IMG/VR virus record: IMGVR_UViG_3300031576_000001
Coordinates: 62,001-126,000 of that record
Length of the DNA: 64,000 nt
Reading direction: 5' to 3' (one strand)
This document shows, in pieces, positions 374 to 43,550 of the stretch. Numbering within the stretch: the stretch's first letter is position 1; every line of letters begins with the position of its first letter. The position numbers were made by a program, and so were the translations under genes. The notes beneath the pieces were generated by a model that saw only the letters and a program-made list of their open reading frames with translations, had not been told where the DNA came from and made no database searches.

Positions 374-1684
374 GTGAGACAGCGAACCGCCAGAGCTGAG
401 AGCTTTCTACCCGCCCCGCCCCAAGAGGAGGGGGCAGGTTTTGGTGCGCCCGTCTCTGCGGGTGAGCGCAAGATACCGAAGAACTTCCCGTTTGACCCCA
501 AGGCATTGCAGCCTCTAGCCAGGACCGTGTGGGCGTCGTCGGTAGCCTTGGGTCATGCTCTCACGGCGTACCGCAACTTCAACAGGGTAAAATCCTCTTC
601 GGTGTCCCCGGACGGCTTGCTAGGCGGGCGTGGTTACGTGCTCAAGGTCACGGACCTACGCACTCGACTCTTTCGAGCCTGTGAGGAGCTATCGTCGGTG
701 ATTGACACGTTGCACGACGAGATAAATGCGCCTCACTGGCAGCCCAAGCTAGCGGACCTGGACGCTAACTCGGCTGAGGACATCCTTCATCTTCTCGACG
801 AAGCCGATTCAACCATGAAAGACCCCGAGGAGGAAGCCGATGAGAAGATCGACGACCTGGAGTCTGAAAATGACGGTCCTGGGGGCACGTCTACCAAGGA
901 GCGCTTTGGTGATAAGGAGACCCCTGGCTCGGATCTGCCCAAGGGGGGCAACGCTGACGAGCTAACCAAGACGCCGGGTAGCTCACGCAACAAGCTAGCC
1001 TCTTGGGACTATCAGCCCGCGACCAACCCCAAGGACACCTGGACGAACATCCCCGGTGGACCCCGTGTGCCTTCTCTGGACAGGAATCTGATTGAAAACT
1101 CCCCTGGGGGCTCGGCTAACGTGGGCGAACCCTCTTCGGAGCGCAACAGGGAGCGCACCCGCGAAGAGACCGACGAGAACAAAGGTATCAAGTTTTACGC
1201 TGCCGTAGCCTACTCGGTACTACCAGACGGCTCCCTTGAGCCCCAAAACACGGTAGACGACTTCGGGCTTGGGTACGGCGCCAAGGGTCCAAACTACAAC
1301 CCCCCTCAGTCTGACGGCAAGGGTATTACCGGACCCACAAGCGGTCTACCCGCTGGACCCCCGGCAAGCAAGGTCAGTCCTTGGGATTCGGACTCGACCC
1401 TGGTAACGGAGCGCCAGGTAAATGACACCACGCGCCACGGACAGTCCAAGCTGCCCCAGCCCCCGCTGAACGTGTCCCCTGTCGCCAGGTCTGACTATTA
1501 CGAGGACAAGGGGCTCCAACCCCTTACCGCAGAGAGCACCCTACCCCAACCCCAGGACGCCATGACGCCAACCGATACCGATCTTCCTGGGGCGAGTGCC
1601 ATGTTTGACCCGCGCGATACCGGCTACCGTAGGTGGGACGTTATACCCGTGGTCAAGCCCGACCCCCTTACCAGTCGAAAGTTA
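374..1684 (+). CDS. Hypothetical Pro/Gly/acidic-rich head-module protein (436 aa), ending at TTA 1682-1684
   Basis: First part of track ORF 374..3907. In-frame AAG TTA CCC ATG at 1679-1690. Confidence 0.55.
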
Positions 1685-1687
1685 CCC

Positions 1688-3907
1688 ATGGGTGATCTAG
1701 GAAATCTTGCAGACTTTTTCGAGGAAACCGCTGGACCCGTGGATCATGAGTGGCTTGCGGTAGACCCCTCCGAGTACGGAGCGTCAGAGGCGCTCCCCCA
1801 GCAAAACCTGGACATGGTTCCTGACCTGAAGGCGCTGTGGAGTCATGCCGACCGTGACCCTTCGGTCTACGCGGTGCCTAACCGGGGGATGCTAGAGAAC
1901 TTCGGGGACGCCAGCCTACGCCATGCAGAGCCCCCTGCGTCACTTACCAAGGAGGCGATGACTCGCGCGGCTCGCCAGATTCTCTTGGTGAACCAGGAAC
2001 CCGCCGCATTCTTTGACGCGCTGCGGCGTAACCATGACCTCTCGACGCTTCGGGCGCACAAGGGGGTACTGGCAAGTGTACTGGCAGAGAGGGGTCTCCT
2101 GGGTCCGTTCTACCTGGACTCCTTGGATTTCCCGGGGTGTAACAAGCGTGAGGGTGTAGCCCTTGCGCATCAATGGTACGCCTCTACGCCCTACGTTCTC
2201 GCCAAGCCTGACTGCGGTGGCTGTGTCTTTGCGAGCAAGGAGCTAGGCAAGGATCACTGCTCGGTTTTTGCCAAGACGCTGGTAGCCACCCCTCCTTATA
2301 CCGAGGCTGAGGCTCTTCGCGTAGAGGGTGCGCAAGCGGCGAGGGGGGTACAAGCCTCACAAGCGAGCACGCCCAAGGAAAGAATTCGTCTTGCCCTTCT
2401 AGCCTCCCCGGTGGTGAGCCAGGCGCTCCCCGAGACCAAGCCGGTCGAGAACACTTCGCGTACCCTCACCCCTGTCAAGCCGGCGCCCGCGGTTACCGTC
2501 GCGGAAGACCTGGCGCTACCCAAGGCAGCGGCGCTGGTGGTACTCACAACCCAGGTTCAGTCTGGCAAGGTCGCCTTTGACCAAGCCGCGCAGTGGCACG
2601 CCAGGATACGGGAAGCCTCTACCTCAGCAACCCTCTCCGGTGTGGTGACTGACCTCACGCAAGCGACACCGCTCGCCAAGAGGGTTTACGAGGCGAACCC
2701 TCAAGCCCCCGTAGCCCCCCTGCCCTCCATGCCCGAGGTGCAGCAAGCCCTGGTTACGGCAGCCAACCTCACGAAGAAGCGTGACGCTGCGTTCAACCTC
2801 AAGGTGGCTCAGGAGAAAGCCAAGCCGGTACTGGCTCTTCTACGCCGGGAAATGCTCAAAGGTCGAAAGCCTGGTCAGCTAGAGCAAGCGTTGCGCGCTT
2901 CTTTTGACGTGACGGATCTGGCGAGCACAAAGCCTTTCTGGGCGCCCCTTGTCAAAGAGGCTGGGCTTTATGGTGAGGTGTACCTACCCCAAGAGGCTTT
3001 TGCTGACTGTCTCCGGGGTGCTGACATTGTAGCCTCGTATCAGCCCACGTTGAAAGTCATTGTCTCTGGGCAGAAGTGCGCGGGCTGTGTGCATAACCGG
3101 GTAGGGTACTGCAACGTGTACCGTCGCCCGCTGGTAGCCGGCAAGGAAGCGGCATTTACGCCCACGGTGGCTCGCTCTGTTTTTGACGACAAGCTAACCA
3201 GGGGCACGCTACCCGCCTCGTCTTGGTCGCGGTACGCCAGCCTCACCCCCCGTGACGCGGTACAGGCCATGTACCGCGAGGAACAGGCGCAACAAGCCAG
3301 GCGAGCGGACGATCTGTACACCGCATTTGCAGGCGCCTCTCAGGAGTACAGCACGTCAGACCTCACCAAGAGGGACGTGGTAAAGACCGCCCGTCTACAA
3401 CTAAACGAGGGTCTTTACGGGGATGACTTGCTCTCTGCGTTGCGGCTCAGGTTTGACGAGCGTGACCTACGGGCGAGCCTCCCCCTCCTTCGCCCTGTGC
3501 TAGCCGAGCAAGGCTTGCAAGGGATATACTACGTGGACCCCACGGTCTATGACGACTACGGCACGGGGTGTGATACGGCGTCTAGCCTTCACCGGACGAG
3601 GGGCGCCATCAAGTACGCCAAGGTGGGTCCAGCGTGCTTCGGGTGTCTATTCCAGACGCGCCCCGGGGTGTGCTCCAAGCTGGCAAAGACCCTGGTACAG
3701 AACCCCCCCTACACGGACAAGACCGCTCAGCAAAAAGCTATTCTAGCGTCGGGTAGGTCAACAGAGACAGATTATGCCTCTTTGCTGAACAATGGGGCTA
3801 ACGTGGTGGCAGAGTACCACCTACGTAGCCAGGGGGACATTGAGCTAGACCCGGAGAACCCCAACCCAGCCCCGATAGGGGTTCAACTCGGGGGTAACGT
3901 GATATGA
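1688..3907 (+). CDS. Hypothetical protein (739 aa) with three repeated 4-Cys modules
   Basis: ATG one codon after the TTA (MGDLGNLADFF...). Three GLxGxxY...C...CxGC...C...LV repeats. ATGA overlap with the next gene. Confidence 0.6.
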   Translation: MGDLGNLADFFEETAGPVDHEWLAVDPSEYGASEALPQQNLDMVPDLKALWSHADRDPSVYAVPNRGMLENFGDASLRHAEPPASLTKEAMTRAARQILLVNQEPAAFFDALRRNHDLSTLRAHKGVLASVLAERGLLGPFYLDSLDFPGCNKREGVALAHQWYASTPYVLAKPDCGGCVFASKELGKDHCSVFAKTLVATPPYTEAEALRVEGAQAARGVQASQASTPKERIRLALLASPVVSQALPETKPVENTSRTLTPVKPAPAVTVAEDLALPKAAALVVLTTQVQSGKVAFDQAAQWHARIREASTSATLSGVVTDLTQATPLAKRVYEANPQAPVAPLPSMPEVQQALVTAANLTKKRDAAFNLKVAQEKAKPVLALLRREMLKGRKPGQLEQALRASFDVTDLASTKPFWAPLVKEAGLYGEVYLPQEAFADCLRGADIVASYQPTLKVIVSGQKCAGCVHNRVGYCNVYRRPLVAGKEAAFTPTVARSVFDDKLTRGTLPASSWSRYASLTPRDAVQAMYREEQAQQARRADDLYTAFAGASQEYSTSDLTKRDVVKTARLQLNEGLYGDDLLSALRLRFDERDLRASLPLLRPVLAEQGLQGIYYVDPTVYDDYGTGCDTASSLHRTRGAIKYAKVGPACFGCLFQTRPGVCSKLAKTLVQNPPYTDKTAQQKAILASGRSTETDYASLLNNGANVVAEYHLRSQGDIELDPENPNPAPIGVQLGGNVI

Positions 3908-4293: not shown

Positions 4294-4304
4294 CGGGAGT
4301 GTAC

Positions 4305-4835
4305 ATGCCACCAGATGAAAATGAACCAAAGACAGAATTGGTCGAGGACAAACGCCCCCCGGTTCTGGTGCCTATGTACCAGAGAACCCGAGCCGACCAC
4401 GTAAGCGCCCTAGTCAGAGCCAAAGATGCTCACGTTCGCACGGACCCTCTGGTCAAGACGGTAGCTGACAAGAGCCCCCCGAAAGACATACTCGACGGGG
4501 TGCTACTTGAGCTAGCCAAAGAGGCTGCCGCGCTGGGGTTCGCAATTCGCGAAGTGGACAAGACCGGGCGGGATAGCTCCAAGCTGTCCAGGTCAAGAGC
4601 GGACGTGCTTGGTAAAATAGCCGTGATTGCCGTAGACCGTAATCGCATGGGTACGGACGAGCTAGACCTCCGGTCAAGCAAGGTCCAACTCCTGTTCAAC
4701 CTCTGGATTACTAACCTGTCCAAGGTCGCCCGCGATACCATGACACGCGAGCAAGCTGACCTGTTCTTCTCCAAGCTGACCGCTGCCATGGCCGGCTGGG
4801 AGAATGAGGCAGAGTCCAACCTGAAAGGCGTATTA
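4305..4835 (+). CDS. Putative terminase small subunit (176 aa), ending at TTA 4833-4835
   Basis: Helical-looking protein directly upstream of terL; TTATG overlap with the terL start. Function inferred from position only. Confidence 0.45.
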
Positions 4836-6844
4836 TGCCCTCTCAGGACAAGCGACCTAACACCCCGTCCATGGCGTCTCTGCTCGCCAAAGCAGGGCGT
4901 GACGTGGTGCAATCCCAGGACGCTGACGTTCCCGTTGCCGACCCCTCGGGACGCCCAGCTACCGCCAGAATCTTCAACATCATAGATTACATTGAGGCTC
5001 CCTGGGGCTTGGATATGAAGGTCTTTCCTGTCCAGCGCTTCATTATCAAGATGTTCTACAATCTCCCGCTAGATGACACGCTACCCGCGGGCGAGACGCA
5101 ACGCATCACGGTAACGGATATGTTCCGTACTAAGACATACCACACATTTACCGAGCGTGAGTATCTGCAATACCTTTATGACGAGGGGCGTTGTAATCTC
5201 TCAGAGCAAGACAACGACCGAAGAGAGCTTATCTTGGTGTGTGGGAGAAGGAGCGGCAAAACCCTCATAGCTGGCATTTTTGCTTCTTATGAGATATATC
5301 GCCTACTCTCTCTAGTGAATCCGCAGAAGTATTACGGACTACCGCAAGGTGACCGTATTCAGATAATCAGCGTAGCTACGGACAAGGAACAGGCGGGCAT
5401 TCTCTTCAACGGAGTCACGGGACACATTACCAAGTGCGACTATTTCACCCCGTACCTGGCACGTAACACACAGAGCAATGTCACGTTCCGCACCCCCTTT
5501 GAGATAGAGAAATACGGGGACACGATACGGCAGGGTGACGGCAAGTTTGTCTCGTACAACGGCAAGGCTAGCCTACGGCTGGCGTTCAAGTCGTGCATCG
5601 CTAAAGGGCTTCGTGGTTCTGGCAACATTGTCATTGTGCTCGACGAGTTTGCACACTTTCAGGTAAAGGGGCAGGCGTCAGCCAAAGAGATATACGACGC
5701 CATCACCCCGTCAAAAGCAGCGTTCTCGCCTAAAGACCCTACAAACCCTATGCGACCAATAGGAGTGGTGGAGTCTCGTGTCATCCTGATTTCCTCTCCG
5801 CTCAACAAGGAGGGTAAGTTCTACGAGCTATTCCACCAAGCCATGGCAAAGGGTCCAGGCTCCGAAAACCTCTTGGCGATTCAGGTGCCGACCTGGGAAA
5901 TGAACCCCACGGTAGAGGCTGGTTACCTCAAAGAGAAGTACTACTCAGACCCGCCCGTGTTCATGGTGGAGCACGGGGCAGAGTTTTCTGACCGCCTCCG
6001 GGGCTGGCTAGAGCGCGAGGAGGACTTGCTTGCTTGCATCGACCCGTTGCACCGCCCCGTGGACCGAGGGGTGCCCCGTGTGCCCTACTTTATGGGTATC
6101 GACGTGGGGCTCATCCATGACGGCACGTCTATCTTCCTCTCGCGCCTCGACGGGGACCGCATTGTGGCGGACTACCACGAGACCTGGCACGCAGGCATCC
6201 CCTGGAAAGAGAGCAACCCTCACCTTCTTAGCCCAGGGACCATGTACGCCAACGGGCTCGACAAGGTAGAACGCCTTGACTTTGACGAGATCGCCAACTG
6301 GATCGTCTCTCTCTGCCAACGGTTCTACGTGGTCGGGGGTCTCTTTGACCGCTGGAATGGTATCCCCTTGGAGCAAGCGCTACACAAGAGGGGTCTCACC
6401 CAGTTTCAGTCTGATTTCTTCTCAAAAGACCAGCGCAGCAAGATGTACCAGGCGGCAAAGATGATGATTTTCGACAAGAAAGTCATCCTGTATGACTGGC
6501 CGCGCCCAGAGGGGGGTAAGGTGGGGAGGTCACCCTTCATTCGTGAGCTTCTCAACCTTCAGGCACACCAGTACACTGCCAATTTGGTGGAGGTCGCCGC
6601 GCCCGCGGTTCCTGGGGCGCACGACGACACGTCAGACGCTTTTACTCGCTCGGTCTGGCTAGCCACGGAGCAGTTGAAAAACAGGAAGATCGTGGCTAGC
6701 CCCTTTGCAGGGGGTGCGCGCCCCACGTCGCCCGGAGCCTCCACGGTGAGCTACGCCGTGCAGAAAGCACGTAACCACGGGCTATTCACGGATAGACTCT
6801 CCCCTAACTCGGCTCTGGGTCGGCGCCTGACGCGGCGTCGCTAA
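4835..6844 (+). CDS. terL: Terminase large subunit
   Basis: Walker A (LVCGRRSGKT), Walker B (IVIVLDEFAHF), motif III (ILISSP), RNase H-like nuclease (MGIDVG...HDDTSDA). Confidence 0.93.
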   Translation: MPSQDKRPNTPSMASLLAKAGRDVVQSQDADVPVADPSGRPATARIFNIIDYIEAPWGLDMKVFPVQRFIIKMFYNLPLDDTLPAGETQRITVTDMFRTKTYHTFTEREYLQYLYDEGRCNLSEQDNDRRELILVCGRRSGKTLIAGIFASYEIYRLLSLVNPQKYYGLPQGDRIQIISVATDKEQAGILFNGVTGHITKCDYFTPYLARNTQSNVTFRTPFEIEKYGDTIRQGDGKFVSYNGKASLRLAFKSCIAKGLRGSGNIVIVLDEFAHFQVKGQASAKEIYDAITPSKAAFSPKDPTNPMRPIGVVESRVILISSPLNKEGKFYELFHQAMAKGPGSENLLAIQVPTWEMNPTVEAGYLKEKYYSDPPVFMVEHGAEFSDRLRGWLEREEDLLACIDPLHRPVDRGVPRVPYFMGIDVGLIHDGTSIFLSRLDGDRIVADYHETWHAGIPWKESNPHLLSPGTMYANGLDKVERLDFDEIANWIVSLCQRFYVVGGLFDRWNGIPLEQALHKRGLTQFQSDFFSKDQRSKMYQAAKMMIFDKKVILYDWPRPEGGKVGRSPFIRELLNLQAHQYTANLVEVAAPAVPGAHDDTSDAFTRSVWLATEQLKNRKIVASPFAGGARPTSPGASTVSYAVQKARNHGLFTDRLSPNSALGRRLTRRR

Positions 6845-7179: not shown

Positions 7180-7698
7180 ATGCCAGACTTCCCCCGTAAC
7201 CGAGACTGTCACGCCCTCTTTCGGGGGGACTCGTTTCCGTCCCTCATTGACAACAATCTTGTCAACGGGGGCTGGAGTGGGGGGTCTGGCGTAGAGTGGA
7301 CCACGCCGTTCAAGGATGAGCCTGTGGTAACCCGTACCGATGGGTACGCTTGCGGGTTCATCCTGTTTGGGTCGAGTGAGTCGTCGGACCAGTACACTGC
7401 CAGTACACACCAGAGCCTCACCTACCGCTACAGTGAGATTTGCTCCGGGGGTTGGCTTATCTCGACCCTCAGTTACGAGAAGTACACCTACGCCTCTCGG
7501 CTCATCCCCCCCTTGGTGCTCATCAATTACCTGCCCACAGACCGGCTGGTATTCTCCCTGAGAGGGTTGTGGACCAAGGAGGACGAGTGGACCCTCTCAG
7601 GTGACCCGAGGGCGCCTAACCAGTACTACGCCGGGGGTGTGGTACAAACACCCACACAAGCCACGTCCTTCTACCTCACCTTGCAGTCCTACCTCTTA
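7180..7698 (+). CDS. Paralog 1 of tandem triplet, possible capsid decoration/cement-type protein (172 aa, TTA stop)
   Basis: Shares YEKYTYASRLIPPL and FSLRGLWTKEDEWTLSxDPRAP with the next two genes; TTATG overlap at 7696-7700. Confidence 0.7.
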
Positions 7699-8213
7699 TG
7701 CCATCTACCTACCCCCCAAGAACCCGAGACTGCGTGGTCTCTTACCGTAGCGTCCGCTACTCGGTCAGGGTAGACCCTGCGGTCAAGTTCTGGCAGGGGG
7801 GTCAGGGCTTTCGGTGGGACGACTCCCCCCTGGACGAGATCCGGGTTACGTCCACGGACGGCTACGGGGCGGGTTTTGCGCTCTTCGGGTCAGATGAGGT
7901 CCATGACCAGCTAACGGCCATGTCAGGCAACCAGCCGTTGCACGAGTTCTTGACGCTGGGGGTGGGCACCTGGCTTATCTCGACCCGGACTTACGAGAAG
8001 TACACGCTGGCGTCGCGGACCATTCCCCCGCTCATTCCCTTGGTCTACGCGCCCAACGAGCCATTGTACTTCAGCCTGAGAGGGTTGTGGACCAAGGAAG
8101 ACGAGTGGACGCTTTCACTGGACCCGAGGGCGCCCTCCCCGGTGGTGGCTCGCGTACAGATGCCCCCCTCTTTGCTAACCGATGACTACCTCTCCCTTCA
8201 CACGGCGCTTTTA
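7698..8213 (+). CDS. Paralog 2 of tandem triplet (171 aa, TTA stop)
   Basis: Same motifs; TTATG overlap at 8211-8215. Confidence 0.7.
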
Positions 8214-9106: not shown

Positions 9107-10930
9107 ATGCCCCCAGAAACACCGTACTACAACCCCCTCTCACGCACCGCTCCGGTAGTGGAGCGCCCCCGCCCCTACATTTCCAAGCTGGCTGGCGGCA
9201 AAATCTTCCCCCTCACAGAGAAAGAGCGCATCGTTCGCAACGCACAGCGAACCGCTAACTTTGGGGGGTTTGGCTCGTCGGACGGTGGCGGTGGGGGCTA
9301 CGGCGGCTCTTTTGGGGGGAACACTGCGGTATCAGGGCAGGGCGCGTTCTTTAGCCCTCAGCTATCGACTGACTTCCTTGAGCTACCTCAGTCGGCAAGA
9401 GAGCGCAGGGAGGTATACCTGCACTATTACCGTGCAGATCCCATTGTAGGTCAGGCAATAGACCTCCTCAGTGAACTGCCTATCTCCAAGATTAGGCTAG
9501 CCAAGCCAAAGCCCAGGACGTGCCCCGAGGGCTTTGAGTCTCCGTCTGATTACGGAGACTACATCCTGCACTTCTTCAACAAAATGTGCAAGCGTATCAA
9601 GCTCTTTCAGCGCTTGCTCATGCTCTCGCACCACACCTTCCTTGACGGCAGTGTGTTTCCGTTCTGTGAGGATTCCGAGGTCGAAGTACCCTCTAACATC
9701 ACACACAAGCGAGTGATGAAGAAGGAAGCCTATCTCTCCGAGGAGGGTGAGCCTATTACCAGGGACGCCCCCTCAGAGGAGCCGTACCCTGACGCCGATG
9801 AGCGCCAGGACGCTTATTTCAAGAAGCACTACCAGGGCTGGTCCAAGATGCTGGTCCTTCCCTTTGACCAGATCAAGCTCACCACGTTTTCGTTTACCGA
9901 CGAGGTGCGTATCGAGCTGATACCCAGCGAGCGTGACCGGCAGATTGTCGAGCTAGCCAAGCAAGGCGACCCGGTAGCCGAGGAAATGTACCAAGCAATA
10001 CCCGCAGAGGTCCGTGAGTACCTCAGCGAGGGGAACCTGATACCTCTGGGCACGGACCCTAACGAGGGCTCATTTGTCTATCACTTCAGCAATCGCAAGA
10101 ACGCTGGCGAGGATATGGGGCACAGCCTTCTCGACCGGAACATTAGGGCGCTCTCGCTGAAGGAGAAGCTACGGCAAGCACAAACGCAAATAGCCTCGCG
10201 TGCAATGACCCCCAAGAGACTAGTGTGGGGTGAGAACCTCTCCGAGGTAGACGTAGAAGACTTGCGTGAGCAAGTCGATATGGCTTTGGTGGACCCTGAC
10301 TACTCCATTGTCACCAACTACGAGGTACACTGGGAAGAAATGGGGTCCGGGGACCGCCTCTTGGACCCTAGCTCGGAATACGAGCAAATTGACAAGGGGC
10401 TCATGACGGGCTTTGGGGTAACGGAGTCTCTTATGAGCGGGGAGTCCCTGTTCTCTGGCGACCGTATCAAGCTAGAGGTACTCAACAACAGGTTCATGCT
10501 CTTCCGCGAGCTAGTTCAAGAATACGTAGAGGAATACGTTTTTCGACCCGTAGCCAGGCGCAAAGGCTTTGTCGAGAAAAACAAGTGGGGCGAAGAGGAG
10601 GAAATCTTTCCGTCGTTGTCCTTTACGCGCCTGGCGCTCAAGGACAATCAAGACCTCTTTGACGCCCTGTTCAACCTCTACCAAAAGGGCAGCATCGACG
10701 TAGGCGTCATCCTTGAGCTGTTCAACATTGACCCTGACTCTACGCGCGAGAAGATTGAGCGGGATATGATGACGGTCAACGATAGCGCGTTCAATGAGAT
10801 TGTCCGAGGGGTCTACGGAGAGGTAGGACGTGGCTTGGCTGAGAAGACGGACATTACCGAGCGGATCGCCAAGTACATGAAGCTGAAGATGGCACCCGCC
10901 CCCGCTGAAGGCGCCGAGGGTCGGTTCTAA
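9107..10930 (+). CDS. Portal protein
   Basis: 607 aa after terL. YYRADPIVGQAIDLLSELP N-terminal helix, GHSLLDR...EKLRQAQ, and FGVTESLMSGE core typical of portals. Confidence 0.8.
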   Translation: MPPETPYYNPLSRTAPVVERPRPYISKLAGGKIFPLTEKERIVRNAQRTANFGGFGSSDGGGGGYGGSFGGNTAVSGQGAFFSPQLSTDFLELPQSARERREVYLHYYRADPIVGQAIDLLSELPISKIRLAKPKPRTCPEGFESPSDYGDYILHFFNKMCKRIKLFQRLLMLSHHTFLDGSVFPFCEDSEVEVPSNITHKRVMKKEAYLSEEGEPITRDAPSEEPYPDADERQDAYFKKHYQGWSKMLVLPFDQIKLTTFSFTDEVRIELIPSERDRQIVELAKQGDPVAEEMYQAIPAEVREYLSEGNLIPLGTDPNEGSFVYHFSNRKNAGEDMGHSLLDRNIRALSLKEKLRQAQTQIASRAMTPKRLVWGENLSEVDVEDLREQVDMALVDPDYSIVTNYEVHWEEMGSGDRLLDPSSEYEQIDKGLMTGFGVTESLMSGESLFSGDRIKLEVLNNRFMLFRELVQEYVEEYVFRPVARRKGFVEKNKWGEEEEIFPSLSFTRLALKDNQDLFDALFNLYQKGSIDVGVILELFNIDPDSTREKIERDMMTVNDSAFNEIVRGVYGEVGRGLAEKTDITERIAKYMKLKMAPAPAEGAEGRF

Positions 10931-10969: not shown

Positions 10970-13900
10970 ATGATGGACGGGAGACTAGCGACCAAAGACA
11001 AGCCCGAGCGTGAAGACGAGGAGGTGGACCGCCTTCATCGCCCCTCGCCTCACGTCAAGCCCCCCCGGCACGACAAGCGCCGTGAGCAAATACAGCCCGA
11101 CGCTGACCCGGACCTGGACGAGTCTGATCCTGACCTCTCCCTCAACCGCCGAGAGGTAGGGGGCTCATCCGTAGCCCAGCGCGTCTTGGCTCGTCTACTG
11201 CAAGCCAAAGGCGCCGAGACGGACAAGGTAACGGTACGTAACACCGAGACGGACAAGGTAGTCCAGGTCAACCCCGAGACCGTTCAAGAGAACCCCGGCA
11301 AGTACGAAGAGGTCAAGGACGACGGCTCCGAGGCAGAAGAGCCCCACCTGACCACGGCGATCCGTGAGAGGCTCAAGTCTGACCCTGGCTTTGCGTCGAT
11401 GGCCAAGGCGCTGTCAGACCCCAAGAGCATGGGGAAGATTGACGATGGGAAGCCCCTGCCGGAGACGCTGGCTAAAGTCTTTCCAGGGCTAAAGACCTTC
11501 GGTGAGGCACGCAAGACGGTTTCCGAGGCTAGTAAAGCTAGCCCGCCCGCCAAGAAGGTGCCTCCGGTCAAGCTACTCGACGACGCCAAGCCAAAGCCTG
11601 TCCACCCCCCGCGCCCTCCCCGCCCTCAGAAGCCAGCCAAGCCGGCGCCCCCGGACGTGCCCAACAAGGACCGCCCCGACAAGGACGCCCCCAGGGATAC
11701 CTACGACGGCAAACCCAAAGAGGAGGGACCAAAGCCACCCTCCAAGCGATACCTTGACGACGAGAAGCTAAAGCCCCCTGGCGCACCGTCACCCGGACCC
11801 AAGCCCGCACCCTCCTCTAAGGATGAGCCTGCCAAGCCGCCAGCGGAACCAGCTAAGCAAGAGGGTCAAGAGAAACCCCCTACCCAAGCGGAACCAACTA
11901 GGCAAGAGGGTCAAGCTAAGCCTACCCCCAAGGCGCAGACCCCTTTTGATGACTGGGTTGCCAAGGGGGGTCTCTCTGACCCTGGCTTTCAAGAGTACCT
12001 GGACAGTGCGCCGGAGAACCTACGGACTCCAGGTACTCCTGTCTTGGTGTGGAACCCCCAGAAGAAGACCCGTGAGCCCTTTGCAGACCTCCCTCCTGAG
12101 CAACAGAAGGCTCACTTTGAGGAGTGGTCCGCAGACACCAAAGCCAAGCAGCAAGAGGCTGAGGCTAAGGCAGAGGAGCAAGCCACCCTACAGCGAGACG
12201 CCCTCTACACGGAAGCCTTCAAGAAGAACCCCAAGGTCGCCAAGCTACTGCAAGCCCTGTCGGACCCTGCCTCTGAGCCGTCCAAAAGACTAGCCGAGCT
12301 AGGTAAGAAGAAGGGTGTGGGGGCTCTTGTGCCCGAGAAAGTATTCCCTGAGCTAGCCGGGCTGCCCACCCTTGAAGTGACCAATGACTTGGACCGCCTT
12401 GCCTCTTTCGCCAAGAGGACCAGGAAGGACTGGGCGCCGGACCCCTACGAGGGCAAGTCTGACCTGAAGGAATTTGTGGACGGGGTAGCCAAGGAGGAAG
12501 AGACCTATTTCCTAGAGTACGCTCTGACCCCGAAGAACAAGCCTCGGATCAAAGTACCCAAGGGTAAAACCCTCAAAGGGTACGTAGCCTCCCTTCCGGT
12601 CGCAGACCAAGAGAAGCTGTTCAACGACTTTGCGAAGCACCTCGACCAAAAGAACCTGAGCACTGACGTGCAAAAGCTGTCTGCCGGCTCCCCAGAGCTA
12701 GCCAAGACTCTGCAAGCCATGTTTGACCCTCGCTCCCCTCTCAGCAAGAAAGCTGCGGAGAATACACAGCTACCCGCTAGTGAACTGCACCCTAAACTAG
12801 CGCACTTCAAGAATGTAACCGTAGGAGAGCTTCTCAAAGCCAGTAAGCCCCTCTTGGTGCCCCCCAAGCTGCCTACGCGCGAAAACTTCACCTACCGACA
12901 GCAGCTAGACGCCCTCAACCTCTTGGACCGCACGTTCCCTGAGAAGACCGCCAAAAGACTCTACGAGCTACACCCAACAGACATTGCCTCGGTCGTAGCC
13001 GCGTACAAGGCTACGCAGTCCAAGGGCGCTACCCTCCCTGAGAAGCTGTTGAAGTCGGGTGGGTTTCAGACTGACATTAATAAGGTGCGACCCCCCTTGA
13101 CGTGGGAGGTCTCAGGTAAGACGGTCCCGTTCTCTAGCCTGGACGAGAAAGCCCAAACTGACGCCTACCTACAGCACAGGGCGATGGTTGTGGCTGCCAG
13201 CCTGCAAGCTGAGGACACACTAGCCTCGACCTGTGAGAAGGGCGGCGTCCCCAAAGAGGCTAGCCGGCTCTTCGCCAGGGTCAGGATGGACACCGTGCCT
13301 GGGGAGTCCCCGGAGGAGCGTACCGAGCGTGCGACGGTCATAGGACGCAAGGCTCACGACCACGCGGTAACCACGGCTGCCCCTGTCATTGAGAACCCCA
13401 AGGAAGCCCTGTCTATCTTCGCCCACGGTAAGCTCAGGGACGAGGCGACCCACAAGATCGCCCTGCAATACAGCAAGGGGGCAGATTATCGCTCCTTTAT
13501 TGACCGGTTCCTGTCACGCAAGGCAAAAGACCCCCTCTCTGAGCACGACACGGTGTCTGGCGCCATGTTCAAGGTCAAAGCCCTCTCCGAAGAGGTAGAC
13601 CGGCGCTCCAAGCAGTACCCCAAGGAAGACCAAGGCTTCTTTCGCACCATGAAGGGTGACCTACGGGCGTTCTTCATGGAAAGGCTAGCCAACCTGAGCC
13701 CCAAGAAGGCGGACCTTCTAAGCGTTGCCCTTGAGGACTCGCGTAGCTCTCCCTGGGCAGAGGGGCTGTTGCCGCCCAAGCCCCAAGCCAAGGGAATCAA
13801 GTCCTGGCTAAGCTCCCACCTGAAACTAGCCTCTTATGCCGGGGCTGTAGGTACACAGTTGACCGAGAGAACTAGTAACTACCGCGGGGTCGCCCCCCTT

Positions 13901-14473
13901 CCTCGCACTCCGTACCCCCCGTGGCTCCCCGTGGACCACGTAACGGAGGGTGACGCTACCCGCCTCTTGGCTGACGCCAGGAAGCGCCTGGACCTCTCCG
14001 TTCCCGGTCGCGTACCGGACAGTGCGTACCGAGAGGCTCTAGACCTCGCGGTCTACACCCTGGATAACGGTGCCTTCTCTCGTGGTCTGCACCCCACCGT
14101 GTACAACGCTCTCCTGGCAAAACTCTCTGGGCAACCTGTAGCCCCTACCGACACCCTCTTGACCGTACAGAAGAAAGCCATGCTCACACAGAAACTCGCC
14201 TCTGACCTTCGCGCCCTGGCTACCAAGGTAGCCGAAGAAGCCCCCCAAGCAGCCTTTGAGATCGTGGAGCTAGCCGAGAAGGTAGCCCAAGACCAAGGCG
14301 AGCAGGATCAAGCTCCCGAGCAGAAACAAGCTCAGGACCAAGAGCAAGGGCAAGGTCAGCAGCAGAAGCAAGCCTACCTTACGCTACGGTCCCTAGTCAT
14401 CAAGACGGCTCATGCCTCTCAGGACAAGGCACCCTTCCTGCCTATACTCCGGCACCTCAAGGCTCAGGGCTTA
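10970..14473 (+). CDS. Large Pro/Lys-rich head-associated protein (1167 aa, TTA stop)
   Basis: Between portal and protease; low-complexity linker; only in-frame TTA found is at 14471, 8 codons before the track stop. Confidence 0.6.
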
Positions 14474-14514: not shown

Positions 14515-14889
14515 ATGGCTTTCAAGCTAGCAACACAAGACGCAGAGCGTATTCTTTCCAACCTGGACCAGGCGTCACAGGTCATCCAAGCCGGCGTAGA
14601 GGCAGGAACCCTCAAGCTGGCTTTCGAGGATGCCAAGGCGATTGTCAACTCACTGGATCAGATTGCCGACCGTATTGAGTACGGTACGTTTGGCAAGCAG
14701 TCCTTTGAGAAGAGGATGGCAGAGGTCATCAAGCGTGAGCCTGACGAGAAGTACATGGACACGTTCAAGAACCCCATGCAGCCCCACGTCACGGACAAGG
14801 ACGAGCCGTACATGGCCGCCTACTCGGATGACCAGTCCTCTGCCATGATTCACGGCAAGAGCACCACAGGGCGCCCGCTCGCTCCCTTA
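14515..14889 (+). CDS. Hypothetical head-module protein (124 aa, TTA stop)
   Basis: Ends GRPLAP-TTA, which leaves AGGAGG (SD of the next gene) in intergenic space. Confidence 0.65.
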
Positions 14890-14915: not shown

Positions 14916-15614
14916 TTGCTAGATTACTGGGCACTCGCCAAAGACTTTCACCAGGGGGACGCGGTTCAGAAGATCAACCCCGTCAACGGGAGTCTTGGTC
15001 CCTACGTGGGCGTTATCAAGCACGCTCACCCGGGGCTGGGGGTGCTTGACATTCAGTGGCCCTTTGGTGTCGAGCGCATTCACCCGGACGAGGTAGTCAA
15101 GGTCAACCCTGAGTTGATGTTGCACCTACCGCCCACGCTCAACCAAGTTTACGGTACGTGGGACACCCGGAGGCTGGCGTCCGCGAGAACCTCTTGGTAC
15201 CCCTTCCCGCCGGGCATCTATACGGACATGGCTCAGGCTTGGCACCACGGCAGGGGTGCTGTGGGCGTGTACGACGACCTTTACCGCAAGTACTCGGGGC
15301 TAGACGACCTAGTGCTGAGAGGCGAGGTCAGCAAGTTCTACACTGCCGCCAAGGTCTTTGGTGACTATCGTGTAGCTCACCACGCGGTAAGGACCGCGAG
15401 CTACTGGGTAGCCGAGAACCGGCAGTACAGGGTCACGGCGGACGAGCTAGACGCCCGTAAGCCCAGGTGTCCCAAGTGTGGGACACGGATGCGCAAGACC
15501 ACCTACAAGATGAAGAAGGGTGAGCGTCACCGCTTGCTAGCTTGCCCCAAGGATCTCTTCTTGGTGAAGACCACGGACATGCTTGGACCCGACGGAAAGG
15601 CAGTGGACTGGTTA
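14916..15614 (+). CDS. Hypothetical protein with C-terminal CxxC Zn-ribbon (232 aa, TTA stop)
   Basis: TTG start with AGGAGG upstream; RCPKCG...LACPKD; ends VDW-TTA at 15612. Confidence 0.65.
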
Positions 15615-15630: not shown

Positions 15631-18552
15631 ATGGCATTCCTCAAGTACGCCCGCTCCACGGTGCTGAAAAGCGACGTGAACTTCGATTCGTGGAACGATA
15701 GCCACAAGGGCAATGCGTTTCAGAATCGAGAGGCGCGTCGTATTGTGGTGGACCGCGTAAGCTCCAAGGACTACCTGCTTTCGCACTGTACCATTGTCGC
15801 CAGCGCCGACGCAGAAGAGTCAGGACTACCTCTGGGTAGGCACCTTGTTGACGGCTTTGAGGTCAATCGCCAGTTCTCTGACTTCTACGTAAAGCAAGAC
15901 TCTGAACTTTTTTTCAACAACAACCATGATGGGTGGTCTCGTCCGTTGATCCTGGGGACGTACAAAACATTTATAGGCTCCCCCTCATACATTGAGCACT
16001 GTCAAATACCAGAGTACGCTAAGGGTAAAATCCTAGACGCTGTAGCCAGGGATGTTGGCCCCTCAGTTTACGTTGACATTCTTGTGGGTACAGAGCGCAA
16101 GCACAAGCCGCTTATCGCTGCAATTCTGTCGAGAAAGATCAACGCCCTCAGCATGGGGTGTAGCATCCAATTTTCTTGCTGCACGCAATGCGGTAACGTG
16201 GCTGCGGACGAGACCGAGCTTTGTTTTCCTCCTGGGACTAGAGTGCTTAGGTCGGATGGCCTCTACACTCCGATAGAAGAGTTGGTCTCTGGTGATGTGG
16301 TTCTAACACACAAAGGAAACGCGCGTACTATCACTGAGACCACTTCTAGAGACTACTCTGGGGAACTAGTGCAACTCCGTGTTGACGGCGTGCCCACACC
16401 ACTACGATCCACACACTCCCATCCGTATCTTGTTTTCCGCCCGAAGACTGTTTGTGCTTGTGGTTGCGGTCAACCCCTAGCAAGAACGGTAGAGCACAGG
16501 AGAGGAGCCGCTAAGGCATTTGAGAGAATGTATCTTCCTGGGCACAACACTCATGAAGGCATTGCACAACACAAGCTAGTTTCTATCACTCCTGAATTTG
16601 TAGCGGCGCGAGACATAGCGGAAGGAGACTATCTAGCCTTTCCTGTGACTGGGGAGTTCTGCAATACGCCGGATGGCACCGAAGAGAAAGCTAAACTCAT
16701 AGGTTACTTTGCGTCAGAAGGCTCATTTATTAAAAGACGAGGTAAGCGAGTCGGGGTTTCATTTGCTTTTGGGGCTCACGAGTCAGAAACTTTGGTAGCT
16801 GATGTTGTAAAACTTTTGGAGTGCGTCTTTGGTGGGGTTAGAAAGGCGCCCGTTGTGCTCTGGGAGGATGCTGTCCAGAGGGATGGTACACTGCCTGTAA
16901 AACGACGCTCAACTAGCCGGGTGGTCCCTGAAGACCTTACTTGCCCATCGTGCGCAGCGCCCTCTGTGTACTTGAGAAACGCTTCATTCAAAAAAGGATC
17001 TCAGTGCTACCAGTGCAAGGTATGCCACAGGTCTTTTGTACTCGGTGCAGAGCGATATAAGCGGGCGCGTGTGTACCAGAGTGGAAACTCCTGTGACGTG
17101 CGTTTCTTGTGCGACAAGGCCGCCGACTTTTTCTATCGGCACTGCGGCGAATACGCCTCGACGAAGAGACTATCACCCGAGGTGATGTCGTGGCCACAAG
17201 AGCTACAAAGACACGTTTTGTGGACTTGGTTGTGTGGTGACGGCTCCCAAACTTCTGGTGAGGGTGTGAAGGGCACGAGCGTATCCTTTAACTTGATAAG
17301 TCAAATGCACCTCATCGCGGCAAGGTGTGGTCTTTATGCTAGGCGCGCTGTTGTCTTTGGTGGGCGTAGTGTTGCCGTGGGGGATGTCGTAGGGTCAGAT
17401 GGGATTGCAAGATTGCGGGATGCACGGGGGTGGCTGCCTACTTTTGTATTGGTCCTTCCGGCGCCTCAAGACCTCAAAGGAATTCTACGGTTCACAGACA
17501 AAGCACGTAAAACTCTTGCTCGCGTTACGTCGGGATACAAGCGGGTGGGTGATTACCTGCTCTATCGTGTTCGTAAGAAGTCTTGCGTTCCATACTCTGG
17601 TAAAGTTTACAATGTGGAAGTGGCTGATGACCATTCTTATGTGGTTGATGGTGTTGCAGTACACAACTGTAACCATATCAAATTCTTCAAGGGTAACTAC
17701 TTCATTGACCCTTACGGTAAGAGGCGCCGCGTAGGAGAGTTCTGTGGACACGCCTCTGACCTTGAGTCTAACAAATTCGTTGAAGCCTCTTGGGTGGGTA
17801 ACCCCGCTTTCGATGGCGCTGTGCTCAGGAACATCCTCAACGCCAGTGACTTTGATAAGACCGCCTACGGCAACCCCGACACGGTGTTCTCGTTCCCGTC
17901 CGTGTCCTTCGTACCCCCCGCAGGCGTCAAGCTAGCTAATCAGCAAGACGACCCCTTTGCTACGCCCTCTCAGGGTGACGCTGGTGCGGGCGACAGCAAA
18001 GCCAAGACTGAGAAGCCACCCCTAGAGGACGCCGTGAAAGACCTTCACGACACCCTCAAGGAAAAAGTGGTCGAGAATGTGCGCAAAGAGCTAGACGACG
18101 CCACGGGGGACGCCGCGCTCAAAGTCACTCAGTCTCCGCAGAACGAAAACGAGAACCTGATCAAGTCAGCCGCTAGCTCGCCCCTCTGGCGTAAGCGGGT
18201 GGCTTTCCTCTCCCCGTACCTCAAGAGCTACACGCCCTCCTTTAATAGGAGGCTGCTGGCGGGCTTGATTAGGGTACAGGCTTTTGGGTGGGGAAATCTC
18301 AAGACCGCAGGCTACGCACCCGAAGAGGTCTTGGTTCTGTCCTACCTCGTTGACCGAATGAAGGGCAAACCAGCCTTTGCCGGGGAGCGTAGGCTTTACG
18401 CCGCGCTTAGCAAGGCTGACCTGAACGCCCCTTGTCACTCGGTTTCCCTCTCTCTCGGTAGACCGCTGACCGCTACGGAGCAGTCCCTTGTGCTTGAAAA
18501 GTGCAACCTCCTCCAAAAAATACACGCAAACTCACTGATACAATCAACCTTA
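15631..18552 (+). CDS. Putative prohead (maturation) protease precursor containing an intein (973 aa, TTA stop)
   Basis: Between portal and scaffold/MCP; LSMGC and FVEASWVGNPA motifs resemble assemblin/HK97-type proteases; only in-frame TTA is at 18550. Confidence 0.65.
16222..17667 (+). mobile_element. Intein (482 aa) with LAGLIDADG endonuclease and extra Cys-rich inserts
   Basis: Starts CFPPGTRV, block B STHSHP, LIGYFASEG and LWTWLCGDG motifs, ends VYNVEV...VAVHN followed by Cys+1. Confidence 0.92.
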
Positions 18553-18569
18553 GAAGAGGCACTCTGACC

Positions 18570-33379: not shown

Positions 33380-34009
33380 TAACCAAGGGGGCTCCTGGGG
33401 CTCTTGGTTTTTCTTGCTTCGCCGGGCGGGCTTCTCCGTCACGACCCAGGCAGCACAACCGAGGGGGCTCCGCTGTTGCAAATCCTGGTAGACACGCTCG
33501 CCGGCTTGCTCAGCCTCGCTCCCCTTGCCGTAATCGTACAGAGCGTCCATCTGACGCACCGAGAGGTGGTTGGGGTAGCGCCTCTCCTCGTCCTTCTGGT
33601 TAAGCCACTCTTCGATCTGCGCCTTGATGCTCTTCTTGAAGTCGCCCCGGGGGTTGGTACGCATACAGCCCCAGCACAGGGCGTACAACTCCTCGAAAGG
33701 CAGCGTGAAGAGGGAGCGCTGCCAGTGCTCGCTCCAAGAGGGCATGACGCCAGCCGACCACGCGAAGTGCCAGGACGAGGCATTCTCAACCCACTCCTCC
33801 ACGGAGAGCCACGCGGGCAGCGTGACGGGCAGAACCTCGTAAACCTTCTTCTCGACGAGACGGTCAGCACAGGGGATCGTGACCGTCTCGTCGAGGTTGA
33901 CTTCGCCCTCGACGTAGACCCCCATGGGGCTGCGGGGGGTAGAGGCGTTCTCCCCGTGGGCACGGAAGATGACTTGGTGGGTAGCGAAGAGGTTTTCGGA
34001 TGTGGACAT
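33380..34009 (-). CDS. Hypothetical protein (209 aa, TTA stop)
   Basis: GC3-rich ORF; ends EPPW-TTA. Confidence 0.65.
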
Positions 34010-34939: not shown

Positions 34940-36175
34940 TAACCAGGAACCGTCCCGTATACCCTCGGGTTTCGTAGCCACGGGCGCGCTCGCCCCGGGG
35001 GACAGCCTTTGGTTGTCCGTGATCAGGTGCCACCCCTTTTGAAAGCCTAGCTCGGTCAGGGTTTGCAGGTTGGCTAGCAGCACGGAGCCCTCCAACGCCT
35101 TGCTGTTCTCTTGGTAGTGCTCGAACCAGCGGACCCCGTACTTGCCATACACAGAGGCAGGCGTGGGGGTGTAGGGTGGCTTCTCGCCCGTGACAATCTG
35201 ATAGCCCAAAGAGTTACACAGGTGGACGTAGACCCTCTCCGAGTTTTCCGTGTCCCACACGTCCAAACCAAACTCGTCCTCTTCGATAGCCTGGGTCATC
35301 TGACCCCCAGCCGCCATCCCCATGTCCACGTTGAGCGACGCCAGCATGAAAGCACTGGTCTCTTCTGTGCCCCGCTCCATGTCGCAGTTGAGCCTGGTGT
35401 CCAGGGTGTAGTCACTGAGAGCTATCGCCCCCTTGGTCACGTTCTCCCCCCAGGCGCACCCAATGGGTACCGTGCTCGACTCGAAAGCGCTGTAGTTCAC
35501 GGTCATGCCCCCGCTACTCTCTGAAATGGTTGTGATGCCACCCTCGAAGGACTGACCCGTACCCCCCCCCTTGCGACTCCTGGTAAAGCCCCGGAAAGTC
35601 TGAGCCATGACAGGGAAGCGAGCCTCGTAGACTTCGCGCTTCATGGGGAAGACTTCGATCTGAAGACCCCCGAAGCTCTCTTTGCCCGAGAGTTGAGACT
35701 CCACCGTCCAGCCTTGACCCAAAGGCGCCGCTACGAACTGGCGGATCTTCCCCTTCTCTACGCAGAAGCCGTCAATCCAGGGCTGCTTGGGGGCGACCAT
35801 GTAGTCCTTCTCACGCAGCCCCGCGGACCACTCTTCCCCGGTCACGGCTGACCTCATACCCGCCGCCACCTTGATCGCAAAGGGGTAGTGCGCCCTGCGG
35901 TCACCCGCGTACCCTGCCTTGAAAGCGATGTAGAGCGCCTCCGCTTGGTACATGGGTAGGAAGATACCCCCGTGTTTGTTCCACTCGGGGGGTACGCGGT
36001 CCTTGTAGCGGTCAACCTCCCTGAGAGGGAAGGCGCCCAGCCCGGGAGGTAGCCGGTGGGTCTCGTCGTTGTCGGGGAGCCTCAGCGTGCGTTGAAAATC
36101 CAGGGTGAGGTTTGCGTTTGCGTGCCCGACCTTACCGGAGAGGTCAAAAACAAGGGTTTCATTGTGTATCCTCAT
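34940..36175 (-). CDS. Conserved hypothetical protein (TTA stop)
   Basis: FQRTLRLPD...LPPGLGAFPL...LPMYQAEA family recalled from bacteria and fungi; ends RDGSW-TTA. Confidence 0.7.
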
Positions 36176-36794: not shown

Positions 36795-37172
36795 TTACCG
36801 TCCCTTGGTGCCAGGGATACTGATCTCGTGGAGGCAGCGTGCAGCGGTACTCACCGCAAGGTAAAACTGCGACACGGCAAAGGCGCGCTCACCAGGGATG
36901 GTAGTCGGGCTGAGATCGATCACGGTTTGGACCCCCCCGTGTGAGGGCAACAGGTTGATCGTAGCCGTAGCCCAGTCAGGGATACCGGCGGCGGGCGAGT
37001 AGCCAAAGGTAAGGGAGGTCTTCTCACCCCTCTTTAGCCGGGCTTCGCAGAGAACAGCCAACTCCTCTGCGAAAGGAGCCCCCTCAAGGTACAGGTTGTA
37101 CCCCAAGTCAAGGAGGTCAAGGGCTTGCGTGGCGATCTGGTTCGCCAACTTGTTGAGTCGAGGTTTTTTCAT
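36795..37172 (-). CDS. Hypothetical protein (125 aa)
   Basis: AGGAGG SD and ATG just after an in-frame TTA; second half of track ORF 36795..37388. Confidence 0.65.
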   Translation of the reverse strand: MKKPRLNKLANQIATQALDLLDLGYNLYLEGAPFAEELAVLCEARLKRGEKTSLTFGYSPAAGIPDWATATINLLPSHGGVQTVIDLSPTTIPGERAFAVSQFYLAVSTAARCLHEISIPGTKGR

Positions 37173-37190
37173 GTGGCCCCTCCTTCTACG

Positions 37191-37388
37191 TAACGAGTAG
37201 ACAGTGACCGGCTGGTCGTACCCCACGGTCACGTCGTAGCGCTTTGTGCCGTCGTGCAGGGTGAGGTACACTTTGCCCTGGCTCTTGTAGACCTCCAAGA
37301 CTTCGCCCTTGGCGACGCCCTCGGGGAGGTACATCTTTACGATCTCAGCCTTGTAGACGTGGGCGGCACAGGTTTCGGTGGTGTTCAT
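37191..37388 (-). CDS. Small hypothetical protein (65 aa, TTA stop)
   Basis: First half of the same track ORF; ends TVYS-TTA; downstream of motif copy 3. Confidence 0.6.
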
Positions 37389-42591: not shown

Positions 42592-42906
42592 TCAGAGGGG
42601 GAGCACCGTGCCAGCCGAGAGGGTCACGCAACCCAGCGCCTTAGCGCCCGCTACCACGGACTGTATGTCCCCCAGCGTGCTTGTCTGCGCTGTCAATGGG
42701 TGTATGTAAATAGGCGTCGTCCCGTCCCCCCTGGATGTCGTGACCACGTAGTACGAGCCTGTTGTCCGTAGGACTAGCTCAAGGGTGCATGTGGGTGTAG
42801 CAGGTACCGTTCTCTCAGAAGCCGTGGAGAGTAGTATCGCCAGGTTGGCCGTGCCCAGAGATATGCCAACCCCGAGCCAGACGAACCAGAGGATGAGGCG
42901 TGTCAT
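42592..42906 (-). CDS. Small membrane-anchored protein (C...LGC family)
   Basis: Hydrophobic N-terminus; TCTLEL...AKALGC. Confidence 0.55.
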   Translation of the reverse strand: MTRLILWFVWLGVGISLGTANLAILLSTASERTVPATPTCTLELVLRTTGSYYVVTTSRGDGTTPIYIHPLTAQTSTLGDIQSVVAGAKALGCVTLSAGTVLPL

Positions 42907-42910
42907 GCGC

Positions 42911-43237
42911 TAACCCCCGTGCCCGCTTCTCAACCGAGCGTCGCTTCTTCCTGCGACGCTCCATCTGGGTCATCTCCACGTCCTCCAGGCGAGCAAAGAG
43001 GGCGTCGTCCACCTTGACCTCCTTGAACCTGTCGGTCTGGTCACCCTTACAGCCGTGCAGAAATACAGCACCACGGTAAAGCGGGTTGAGAAAGAGGTAA
43101 AGGGTGGTATCGGGTTCGTTGTCGGTCCACGCTGCCCAGCGTGATAGCGTCCCTTCGGAGGCGAGGTCTACTTCCATGGCGAGGTCCGGGTGGAGGTTGC
43201 CTGTTAGCACAGCGTCTACTATACCCCGGGACAGCAT
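42911..43237 (-). CDS. Hypothetical protein (TTA stop)
   Basis: Ends KRARG-TTA, 4 nt before the ATG of the next gene; start at 43237 or 43177. Confidence 0.5.
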
Positions 43238-43550
43238 GACAGACGACAGCGCACCAAAGGCCCTGCTAACCCCCCTCGACCCGGAAAGCCTCATGGCGCT
43301 ACAGAGGCACCAAGAGATCCGAGCCAAGATCGCCCACGATATGCTTGAGCTTGAGCAAGAGAAGGTCCGTTTGCTTGTCCTAGCCCAGGGCTTCGATAAG
43401 GAGGCACACTCCCTCTTCGCCAAGCTGCTTACCGAGAGGGGGCAGAACGCCGACGCCAAGGTCTACGTAGACTTCAAGGACGGTCTACTCAAGCCTGTAG
43501 GCGAGCCAAACGTCCACTCCTTAGCTAAGCCCCCCTATCCCCCCCTCTAA
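43236..43550 (+). CDS. Small coiled-coil hypothetical protein
   Basis: MTDDSAPK...; restarts the + strand structural run. Confidence 0.55.
   Translation: MTDDSAPKALLTPLDPESLMALQRHQEIRAKIAHDMLELEQEKVRLLVLAQGFDKEAHSLFAKLLTERGQNADAKVYVDFKDGLLKPVGEPNVHSLAKPPYPPL

Follow-up and report, generated by a model that had tools for sequence, protein, structure and literature searches.

A central question raised by this locus is whether a 1177-codon reading frame in the genome of a huge phage encodes one long protein or two adjacent genes, and, if two, what separates them. The window analyzed here is a stretch of 64,000 nucleotides (positions 62,001 to 126,000 of IMG/VR record IMGVR_UViG_3300031576_000001), and it derives from a roughly 323-kb phage contig (322,633 bp; JGI 3300031576, Ga0247727_10000022). 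The frame in question, ORF 374..3907 on the plus strand, begins with GTG at 374, ends with TGA at 3905-3907, and contains a single in-frame TTA (codon 437, positions 1682-1684) in the context AAG (1679-1681) TTA CCC (1685-1687) ATG (1688-1690). The initial annotation proposed that this TTA, normally a leucine codon, splits the frame into two same-frame genes, the first with a Pro/Gly/acidic low-complexity region and the second a structured cysteine-module protein, and our analysis supports this interpretation. Upstream of the TTA is a protein with a structured, conserved N-terminal part and a long Pro/Gly/acidic low-complexity tail (gene 1, 374-1684, 436 codons followed by TTA). Downstream, after a 3-nt spacer (CCC, 1685-1687) that provides the (A/C)CC ATG start context common in this genome, is a protein of 739 aa (gene 2, 1688-3907) that starts MGDLGNL, has three repeats of a helical plus four-cysteine module, and ends in TGA.

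To determine whether the two parts exist as independent proteins, we searched them separately. The C-terminal part recovered about 70 proteins of 555-928 aa, and those that we read begin M[A/G][D/E]LGDL at residue 1; the N-terminal part recovered more than 300 stand-alone proteins of about 400-550 aa. No fused homolog was found within the 406-1293 aa range searched, in which the only 1177-aa hit was the window's own gene call. In the closest relative (locus L015), the two genes are separate and encode 436 and 738 aa. The first is 64% identical to its counterpart in the window, aligns over residues 1-436, and ends CGA AAG TAA where the window has CGA AAG TTA, and the second starts 4 nt later in a different frame. 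In 13 further related loci the second gene starts at the same conserved ATG, with the pattern M-x-[D/E]-L-G-[D/N]-L, and is preceded by standard stops in varying frames. What the two proteins do is unknown: neither had Pfam or PHROG hits, the full structure model of the C-terminal part had no Foldseek match, and a model of the single repeat module (pLDDT 86) matched only generic helical bundles (Z up to 5.5) and nothing in the viral structure library. Further, no DNA similarity to known phages was found.

The initial annotation also mentioned a pattern of TTA at the ends of ORFs, and this pattern is real. Of 39 in-frame TTAs in the window, 16 lie in the last 12 codons of ORFs, compared with only 3 of 152 and 1 of 132 TTAs in the other two frames (4 of 284 combined), against 3.5% expected (Fisher odds ratio 49, p=3e-13). 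Because out-of-frame TTAs are not enriched at ORF ends and none of the 15 TAG stops is preceded by T, we could exclude a frame-independent TTAG or TTAGGG motif upstream of starts, such as a promoter or ribosome-binding element. No sequence motif flanks the terminal TTAs, apart from the absence of A at the following base. Overall, about 24 of roughly 60 genes in the window have an in-frame TTA at the gene end.

Thirteen of these sites, including the one at 1682, coincide with the terminator of an ortholog, and in seven cases the ortholog has a standard stop. Immediately upstream of gene 1, a 106-aa gene (49-369) ends in TTA at 367-369: the L015 ortholog (105 aa) aligns to its last residue and has TGA where the next window codon is TTA, 10 more distant relatives have a standard stop at that position, and the related locus L037 has TTA. 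The standard-code ORF would instead run on to 399 and overlap the next gene by 26 nt. Three sites read TTATG, the analog of the usual TAATG stop/start overlap, and under the standard code these genes would overlap the next gene by 76-151 nt. The first, at 4833-4835, terminates gene 4299-4835 and overlaps by one base the ATG of the large terminase gene; orthologs end here, within one residue, with standard stops, and L037 also has TTATG. The second, at 7696-7698, terminates gene 7180-7698; the L015 ortholog ends exactly here with TGA, and the standard-code overlap would be 76 nt. The third, at 8211-8213, terminates gene 7698-8213, and all 10 relatives that have this gene terminate exactly here, nine with standard stops and L037 with TTA. 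At 19800-19802, gene 18570-19802 ends VFFGG TTA where the ortholog in locus L016 ends VFFGG TGA, and at 29117-29119 (gene 28478-29119) the ortholog in locus L052 ends exactly at the TTA with TGA.

At the other six sites the ortholog itself has TTA. These are the terminators of the 1167-aa gene 10970-14473 (TTA at 14471-14473), for which the L016 ortholog has a TTA within 3 residues, just upstream of the conserved next start MAFKLA; of gene 14515-14889 (14887-14889), where L016 has TTA at the identical aligned position (RPLAP-TTA) and homology ends there; of the gene ending at 15614 (15612-15614), where L016 has TTA at the identical position (AVDW-TTA), followed by the conserved start MAFLKYA; of the major capsid gene 20638-21528 (21526-21528, TTA GGG TGA), a Pfam Phage_capsid match whose L052 ortholog is 92.5% identical and also ends in TTA at the same codon; of gene 25333-26274 (26272-26274), where L052 has TTA at the aligned position; and of gene 29161-29751 (29749-29751), where L052 has TTA at the identical position. 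Homology vanishes right after a conserved TTA.

The TTA at 18550-18552, which terminates an intein-containing protease-like gene (15631-18552), lies 4 codons before the standard stop, with the next ATG at 18570, and the L016 ortholog ends a few residues earlier with TGA. The TTA at 27620-27622 (gene 26339-27622) lies 5 codons before the standard stop, with a second TTA at 27629, but the ortholog end is not colinear. Assigned without ortholog comparison are the terminators at 49613-49615 (gene 48476-49615, TTA GGG TAA) and 50124-50126 (gene 49632-50126, TTA GGG TAG); probable terminators at 39939-39941 (gene 39066-39941, in the lower-GC island, 20 codons before the standard stop, with the next start near 39995) and 44889-44891 (gene 43554-44891, with a second TTA at 44919 that lies 10 nt before the next ATG at 44932); and a possible terminator at 57897-57899 (gene 57330-57899, 20 codons before the standard stop). 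On the minus strand, TTA terminates gene 36175..34940 (34940-34942, with a second TTA at 34934-34936) and gene 34009..33380 (33380-33382), and probably the gene inside ORF 43459..42815 (42911-42913). A second same-frame split also occurs on this strand: in ORF 37388..36795, 65 codons are followed by TTA (37191-37193), then 18 nt containing AGGAGG, then ATG at 37172-37170.

Well-supported genes have essentially no internal TTA. All in-frame TTAs in well-supported plus-strand genes are terminal or lie in doubtful 5' extensions, and other internal TTAs lie in junk-like ORFs or at the second same-frame junction, although a few that lie further from ORF ends have not been individually explained. 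The other five leucine codons are each used 300-530 times. However, rarity inside genes is not diagnostic on its own, because TTA is also rare (about 0.05-0.1% of codons) in relatives of similar GC content that use the standard code. Two related phages share the trait: loci L037 and L015/L016/L052 also have TTA at gene ends, and with the window they form a clade in the terminase tree (support 99/98), whereas 10 more distant relatives have standard stops at those positions.

Based on these lines of evidence, and with high confidence, we conclude that ORF 374..3907 is two adjacent genes that happen to share a frame, and that in this clade TTA is not used as a leucine codon but marks gene ends alongside TAA, TAG, and TGA, accounting for about 40% of gene ends in the window. 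Termination at UUA is inferred from DNA comparisons alone, without protein-level or RNA-level evidence, and some readthrough cannot be excluded. How termination happens is likewise an inference. By analogy with organelles, where UUA stops are read by altered RF2 or RF1 (PMC12574857), the most likely route is that UUA has no efficient cognate tRNA during infection and is read by a class-I release factor with widened second-base specificity, which could be the host's or an unrecognized phage factor. Translation of gene 2 would then start at the ATG only 3 nt downstream, probably by termination-reinitiation coupling.

No component of this mechanism has been identified. Following the window's contig from 57.7 to 163.3 kb (about 106 kb) and the relative's contig to its end (about 47 kb) revealed no tRNA gene and, among the called genes, no RF-1 or PCRF Pfam hit. 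A tblastn search with Escherichia coli RF2 gave no hit (E>1) in the window or in the related loci L001-L016, and scans of the viral collection with RF2 peptides and with a GGQHVNxTxSA[V/I]R coding pattern did not return this contig, although such scans miss divergent factors. The host is unknown, and the only two leads are weak and conflicting: one relative's contig is binned in a 'Lysinibacter sp.' (Actinomycetota) metagenome-assembled genome (MAG), and the nearest isolate by terminase (28% identity) is a jumbo phage of Tunturiibacter (Acidobacteriota), which uses the standard code. A more speculative possibility, which we consider unlikely but not excluded, is that the phage rather than the host imposes the UUA-to-stop reading, through an unrecognized release factor or an activity that removes tRNA-Leu(UAA). 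Host messages containing UUA would then be truncated while the phage's own genes, which lack internal TTA, would be immune, and the change would act both as a host shut-off and as a barrier to genes from competing elements.

Of the alternatives, the one that survives best, although still improbable, is that TTA is a conditional or leaky terminator or a stall site, read as leucine when a tRNA-Leu(UAA) is available, much as the bldA tRNA appears to control rare TTA codons in Streptomyces, and ending translation otherwise, so that both separate and extended or fused products would be made at different times. Consistent with this, most TTA sites are followed within 1-10 codons by a standard stop, three share the tandem form TTA GGG T(G/A)(A/G), no release factor was found in the searches above, and one relative's contig is binned with an actinobacterial MAG, a group in whose high-GC members TTA is probably the classic rare, regulated codon. 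However, the distance from a TTA to the next in-frame standard stop is no different from that after ordinary stops (p=0.16), which gives no support to selected backup stops. Further, the frames of adjacent genes differ between relatives, so no fusion product is conserved; in the TTATG and other long-tail cases, readthrough would translate 24-49 codons of the next gene out of frame; and no tRNA gene was found in the available sequence.

It is very unlikely that the standard code applies and that ORF 374..3907 encodes one 1177-aa fusion protein, with the other TTAs as ordinary leucines in short C-terminal tails. Automatic gene calling did produce this protein, and there is no standard stop between 374 and 3907, but this reading is contradicted by the absence of fused homologs in the size range searched, the 13 coincidences with ortholog terminators, the frame specificity of the enrichment, the unrelated sequences that follow a conserved TTA, and the gene overlaps that it implies. 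A single TAA-to-TTA change, either a mutation or an assembly error, could explain the one-base difference from the relative at 1682, but is similarly contradicted by the recurrence of the same situation at about 24 gene ends, by conservation of TTA at orthologous gene ends in independent assemblies from other samples, by the identity of the public contig to the window over 9.9 kb, and by the lack of other stop-loss substitutions. Finally, editing of UUA to UAA, or a +1 shift at a starved UUA so that UUA-G is read as UAG (perhaps as at AGA/AGG in human mitochondria), is equally doubtful because, although 9 of 22 TTA sites are followed by G and at 1682 the +1 frame reaches a TAG five codons later, the other 13 are followed by C or T, no motif flanks the sites, and U-to-A editing is, to our knowledge, unknown in bacteria and phages.

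Among the closest known systems is the labyrinthulid (Thraustochytrium) mitochondrial code (NCBI translation table 23), in which the same codon makes the same change while TAA, TAG, and TGA remain stops, and for which the evidence is of the same kind, TTA at positions where homologs end. That case involves an organelle with its own small tRNA set and an altered mitochondrial RF2 (Ser204 substitution, as cited in PMC12574857), whereas the system here is a large double-stranded DNA phage. UUA and UCA are stops in plastids of green-colored dinoflagellates (pedinophyte-derived), and UUA and UUG are stops in Marsupiomonadales and Pseudoscourfieldia mitochondria (PMC12574857). There too a large share of genes end in the new stop (more than half in some plastids), and earlier annotations showed apparent gene fusions and extensions because the codon was read through, but in the window only TTA is affected, as TCA (150 in-frame uses) and TTG (about 310) are ordinary sense codons. 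All alternative codes reported for phages turn a stop codon into an amino acid. As in Lak and crAss-like phages, in which TAG or TGA is recoded, the trait is clade-restricted and standard gene callers mis-annotate it, but the direction is opposite: there genes look fragmented, and here they look fused or extended. In the window, long uninterrupted ORFs exist under the standard code, TAA, TAG, and TGA all coincide with ortholog ends, so none of them is recoded, and no suppressor tRNA was found in the available sequence.

We found sense-to-stop changes described only for organelles, and our searches of the open literature found no report of TTA, or any other sense codon, used as a stop in a phage or bacterium. 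If confirmed, this clade shows that the stop-codon set can expand in a bacterial translation system, points to a release factor or another factor able to read UUA, and gives a natural test case for codon capture, in which TTA, almost absent as a sense codon, reappears as a stop. A comparable near-absence of UUA from coding sequence probably exists in some high-GC bacteria, where it seems to be still leucine or simply unread and not placed systematically at gene ends. In practice, standard gene callers fuse or extend about 40% of the genes of such genomes, and screens for alternative codes that infer amino-acid meanings would not detect the change. For instance, in the window standard gene callers yield the 1177-aa artifact, the false overlaps of 76-151 nt, and a major capsid gene with a false tail.

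The window covers positions 62,001-126,000 of a 322,633-bp viral contig (IMG/VR UViG_3300031576_000001, which is JGI Ga0247727_10000022) and is identical to the public record over the 9.9 kb compared. It is a tailed-phage genome of about 58% GC, with genes for the large terminase (4835-6844), portal (9107-10930), and major capsid protein (20638-21528), as well as several intein-bearing genes. Three large genes (15631-18567, 21556-24387, and 57964-62772) carry Hint/intein and LAGLIDADG homing-endonuclease signatures: a protease-like gene, a DNA methylase, and a UvrD-type helicase. ORF 374..3907 is open for 1177 codons under the standard code and contains exactly one in-frame TTA, at 1682-1684, in the context AAG TTA CCC ATG, which confirms the observation of the initial annotation that a single TTA divides this reading frame.

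The two parts of this ORF are separate genes. The part downstream of the TTA (739 aa, starting MGDLGNL) finds about 70 homologs of 555-928 aa, and the only 1177-aa hit is the window's own automatic gene call. The homologs that we retrieved, including the two longest, begin M[A/G][D/E]LGDL at residue 1, and they are longer only because they have extra internal repeats. The upstream part (436 aa) finds more than 300 stand-alone proteins of about 400-550 aa. In 13 related viral loci, the second gene begins at the same conserved ATG, and the preceding gene ends with a standard stop in varying frames. The closest relative is a 150-kb contig assembled from run SRR29476925 (represented by loci L015, L016, L052, and L055; 58-92% protein identity), in which the first gene also has 436 codons and ends CGA AAG TAA, followed by 4 nt and the ATG, where the window has CGA AAG TTA CCC ATG. 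Thus, the TTA sits exactly on the ancestral stop position.

The use of TTA at gene ends is genome-wide and frame-specific. Of 39 in-frame TTAs in 60 ORFs, 16 lie in the last 12 codons, where 3.5% are expected, but only 3 of 152 and 1 of 132 TTAs in the other two frames do (odds ratio 49, p=3e-13), and no other codon behaves this way. If the first in-frame TTA is counted as the gene end, there are about 22-24 TTA ends, compared with 18 TGA, 13 TAA, and 7 TAG. Three sites (4833, 7696, and 8211) read TTATG, with the A shared with the next start, the analogue of the common TAATG overlap; under the standard code, these genes would overlap their neighbors by 151, 76, and 88 nt, respectively. Three gene ends (21526-21534, which belongs to the capsid gene, 49613-49621, and 50124-50132) share the form TTA GGG T(G/A)(A/G), in which TTA is followed one codon later by a standard stop, and this could be chance or a preferred tandem terminator. 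A second ORF that is really two same-frame genes split by TTA lies on the minus strand (37388..36795), where 65 codons are followed by TTA (37193-37191), 18 nt containing AGGAGG, and then ATG. The remaining internal TTAs lie in doubtful 5' extensions of ORFs or in two junk-like minus-strand ORFs of 130-136 codons at 41325-42266, which have Ser/Cys/Arg/Trp-rich translations and several in-frame TTAs and look like non-genes, so that about 1 kb here has no convincing coding assignment. Beyond the window, two more called genes on the same contig (L039 10001-13747 and L040 7342-7971) have an in-frame TTA far from the end (95 and 84 codons) and may be further same-frame gene pairs fused by standard gene calling.

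To test this pattern comparatively, we aligned orthologs to their last residue and asked which codon comes next in the window. It is TTA at 367, 1682, 7696, 8211, 19800, and 29117, and at 4833 within one residue, sites at which the relatives have TAA, TAG, or TGA. At 14887, 15612, 21526 (major capsid, 92.5% identical), 26272, and 29749, and at 14471 within three residues, the closest relative also has TTA at the same position. The same holds for a sigma-factor-like gene just upstream of the window, for which sequence identity is high up to SKC-TTA in both phages and is lost immediately after it. The closest relative uses TTA ends less often, at about 8 of about 50 genes compared with about 40% in the window. 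Several of its standard stops correspond to TTA in the window and the reverse also occurs, so TTA and standard stops interchange over evolutionary time. Ten more distant relatives end the orthologs of four TTA-terminated window genes with standard stops at exactly the predicted positions. A third phage (locus L037, a 127-kb contig binned in a “Lysinibacter sp.” metagenome-assembled genome) also uses TTA at four of ten orthologous gene ends, and its sites include a TTATG and two same-frame TTA+3 nt+ATG junctions. The three phages with the trait form one group in a terminase tree (support 99/98), whereas more distant relatives and the nearest isolate use TTA as a rare ordinary codon.

Although the DNA evidence, which rests on sequence comparison alone, shows that translation units end at TTA, it does not show how, and a conditional, leaky stop cannot be excluded. 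However, the distance from a TTA to the next in-frame standard stop (median 7.5 codons) does not differ from the distance after ordinary stops (median 13, p=0.16), and there is therefore no evidence that backup stops are selected. No sequence motif flanks the sites, and a +1 shift to TAG cannot be general, because the following base is G at 9, C at 7, T at 6, and A at 0. None of the 15 TAG stops is preceded by T, so a frame-independent TTAG motif cannot explain the pattern. Further, TAA, TAG, and TGA all coincide with ortholog ends, so this is not the familiar phage stop-codon recoding. Assembly error and a one-off mutation are excluded by the conservation of TTA at orthologous sites in independent assemblies.

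In four literature searches, we found no report of a sense codon used as a stop in phages or bacteria, and the closest precedents are organellar. UUA-to-stop changes are documented in labyrinthulid mitochondria and green dinoflagellate plastids, where the agent is an altered RF2, and in some green-algal mitochondria, where an altered RF1 reads UUA and UUG (PMC12574857). By analogy, we propose that UUA has no cognate tRNA and is read by a release factor with relaxed second-base specificity, which either the host or the phage might supply. We could not find such a factor: there was no RF hit in the window or in loci L001-L016, none appeared among called genes over 106 kb of this contig (about 217 kb of which was not covered) or 47 kb of the relative, and three scans of the viral collection, which miss divergent factors, did not return this contig. 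No tRNA genes were found in the sequence searched. With respect to initiation, the AGGAGG at the minus-strand junction shows that the genome does use a strong Shine-Dalgarno sequence in some places. Thirty gene starts (for example, 14515, 15631, 20638, 29776, 37683, 44932, and 48476) show an unusual context, in which the two bases before the start codon are C in 19 of 30 genes each, giving ACC ATG in 10 and CCC ATG in 5, with only a weak purine-rich stretch 8-13 nt upstream.

The two proteins encoded by ORF 374..3907 are conserved neighbors just upstream of the terminase in a large family of huge phages. Neither matches Pfam or PHROGs, and although their position suggests a role in the virion or in packaging, this is a guess. 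The structure model of the downstream protein (1688-3904) shows three repeats of a four-helix unit followed by a small four-cysteine beta unit. The four cysteines are invariant in each repeat and are probably metal-binding, and some homologs have one or two extra copies of a helical repeat. No convincing structural relative was found. Elsewhere in the window, a lower-GC island at about 38000-41400 (49-52% compared with 58%) holds a TnsA-like endonuclease domain and a DUF7487 protein and is probably an inserted mobile element, and the product of the gene at 47366-48430 matches Pfam PF25216 (Volactin), an actin-like family, according to the precomputed annotation of the contig.
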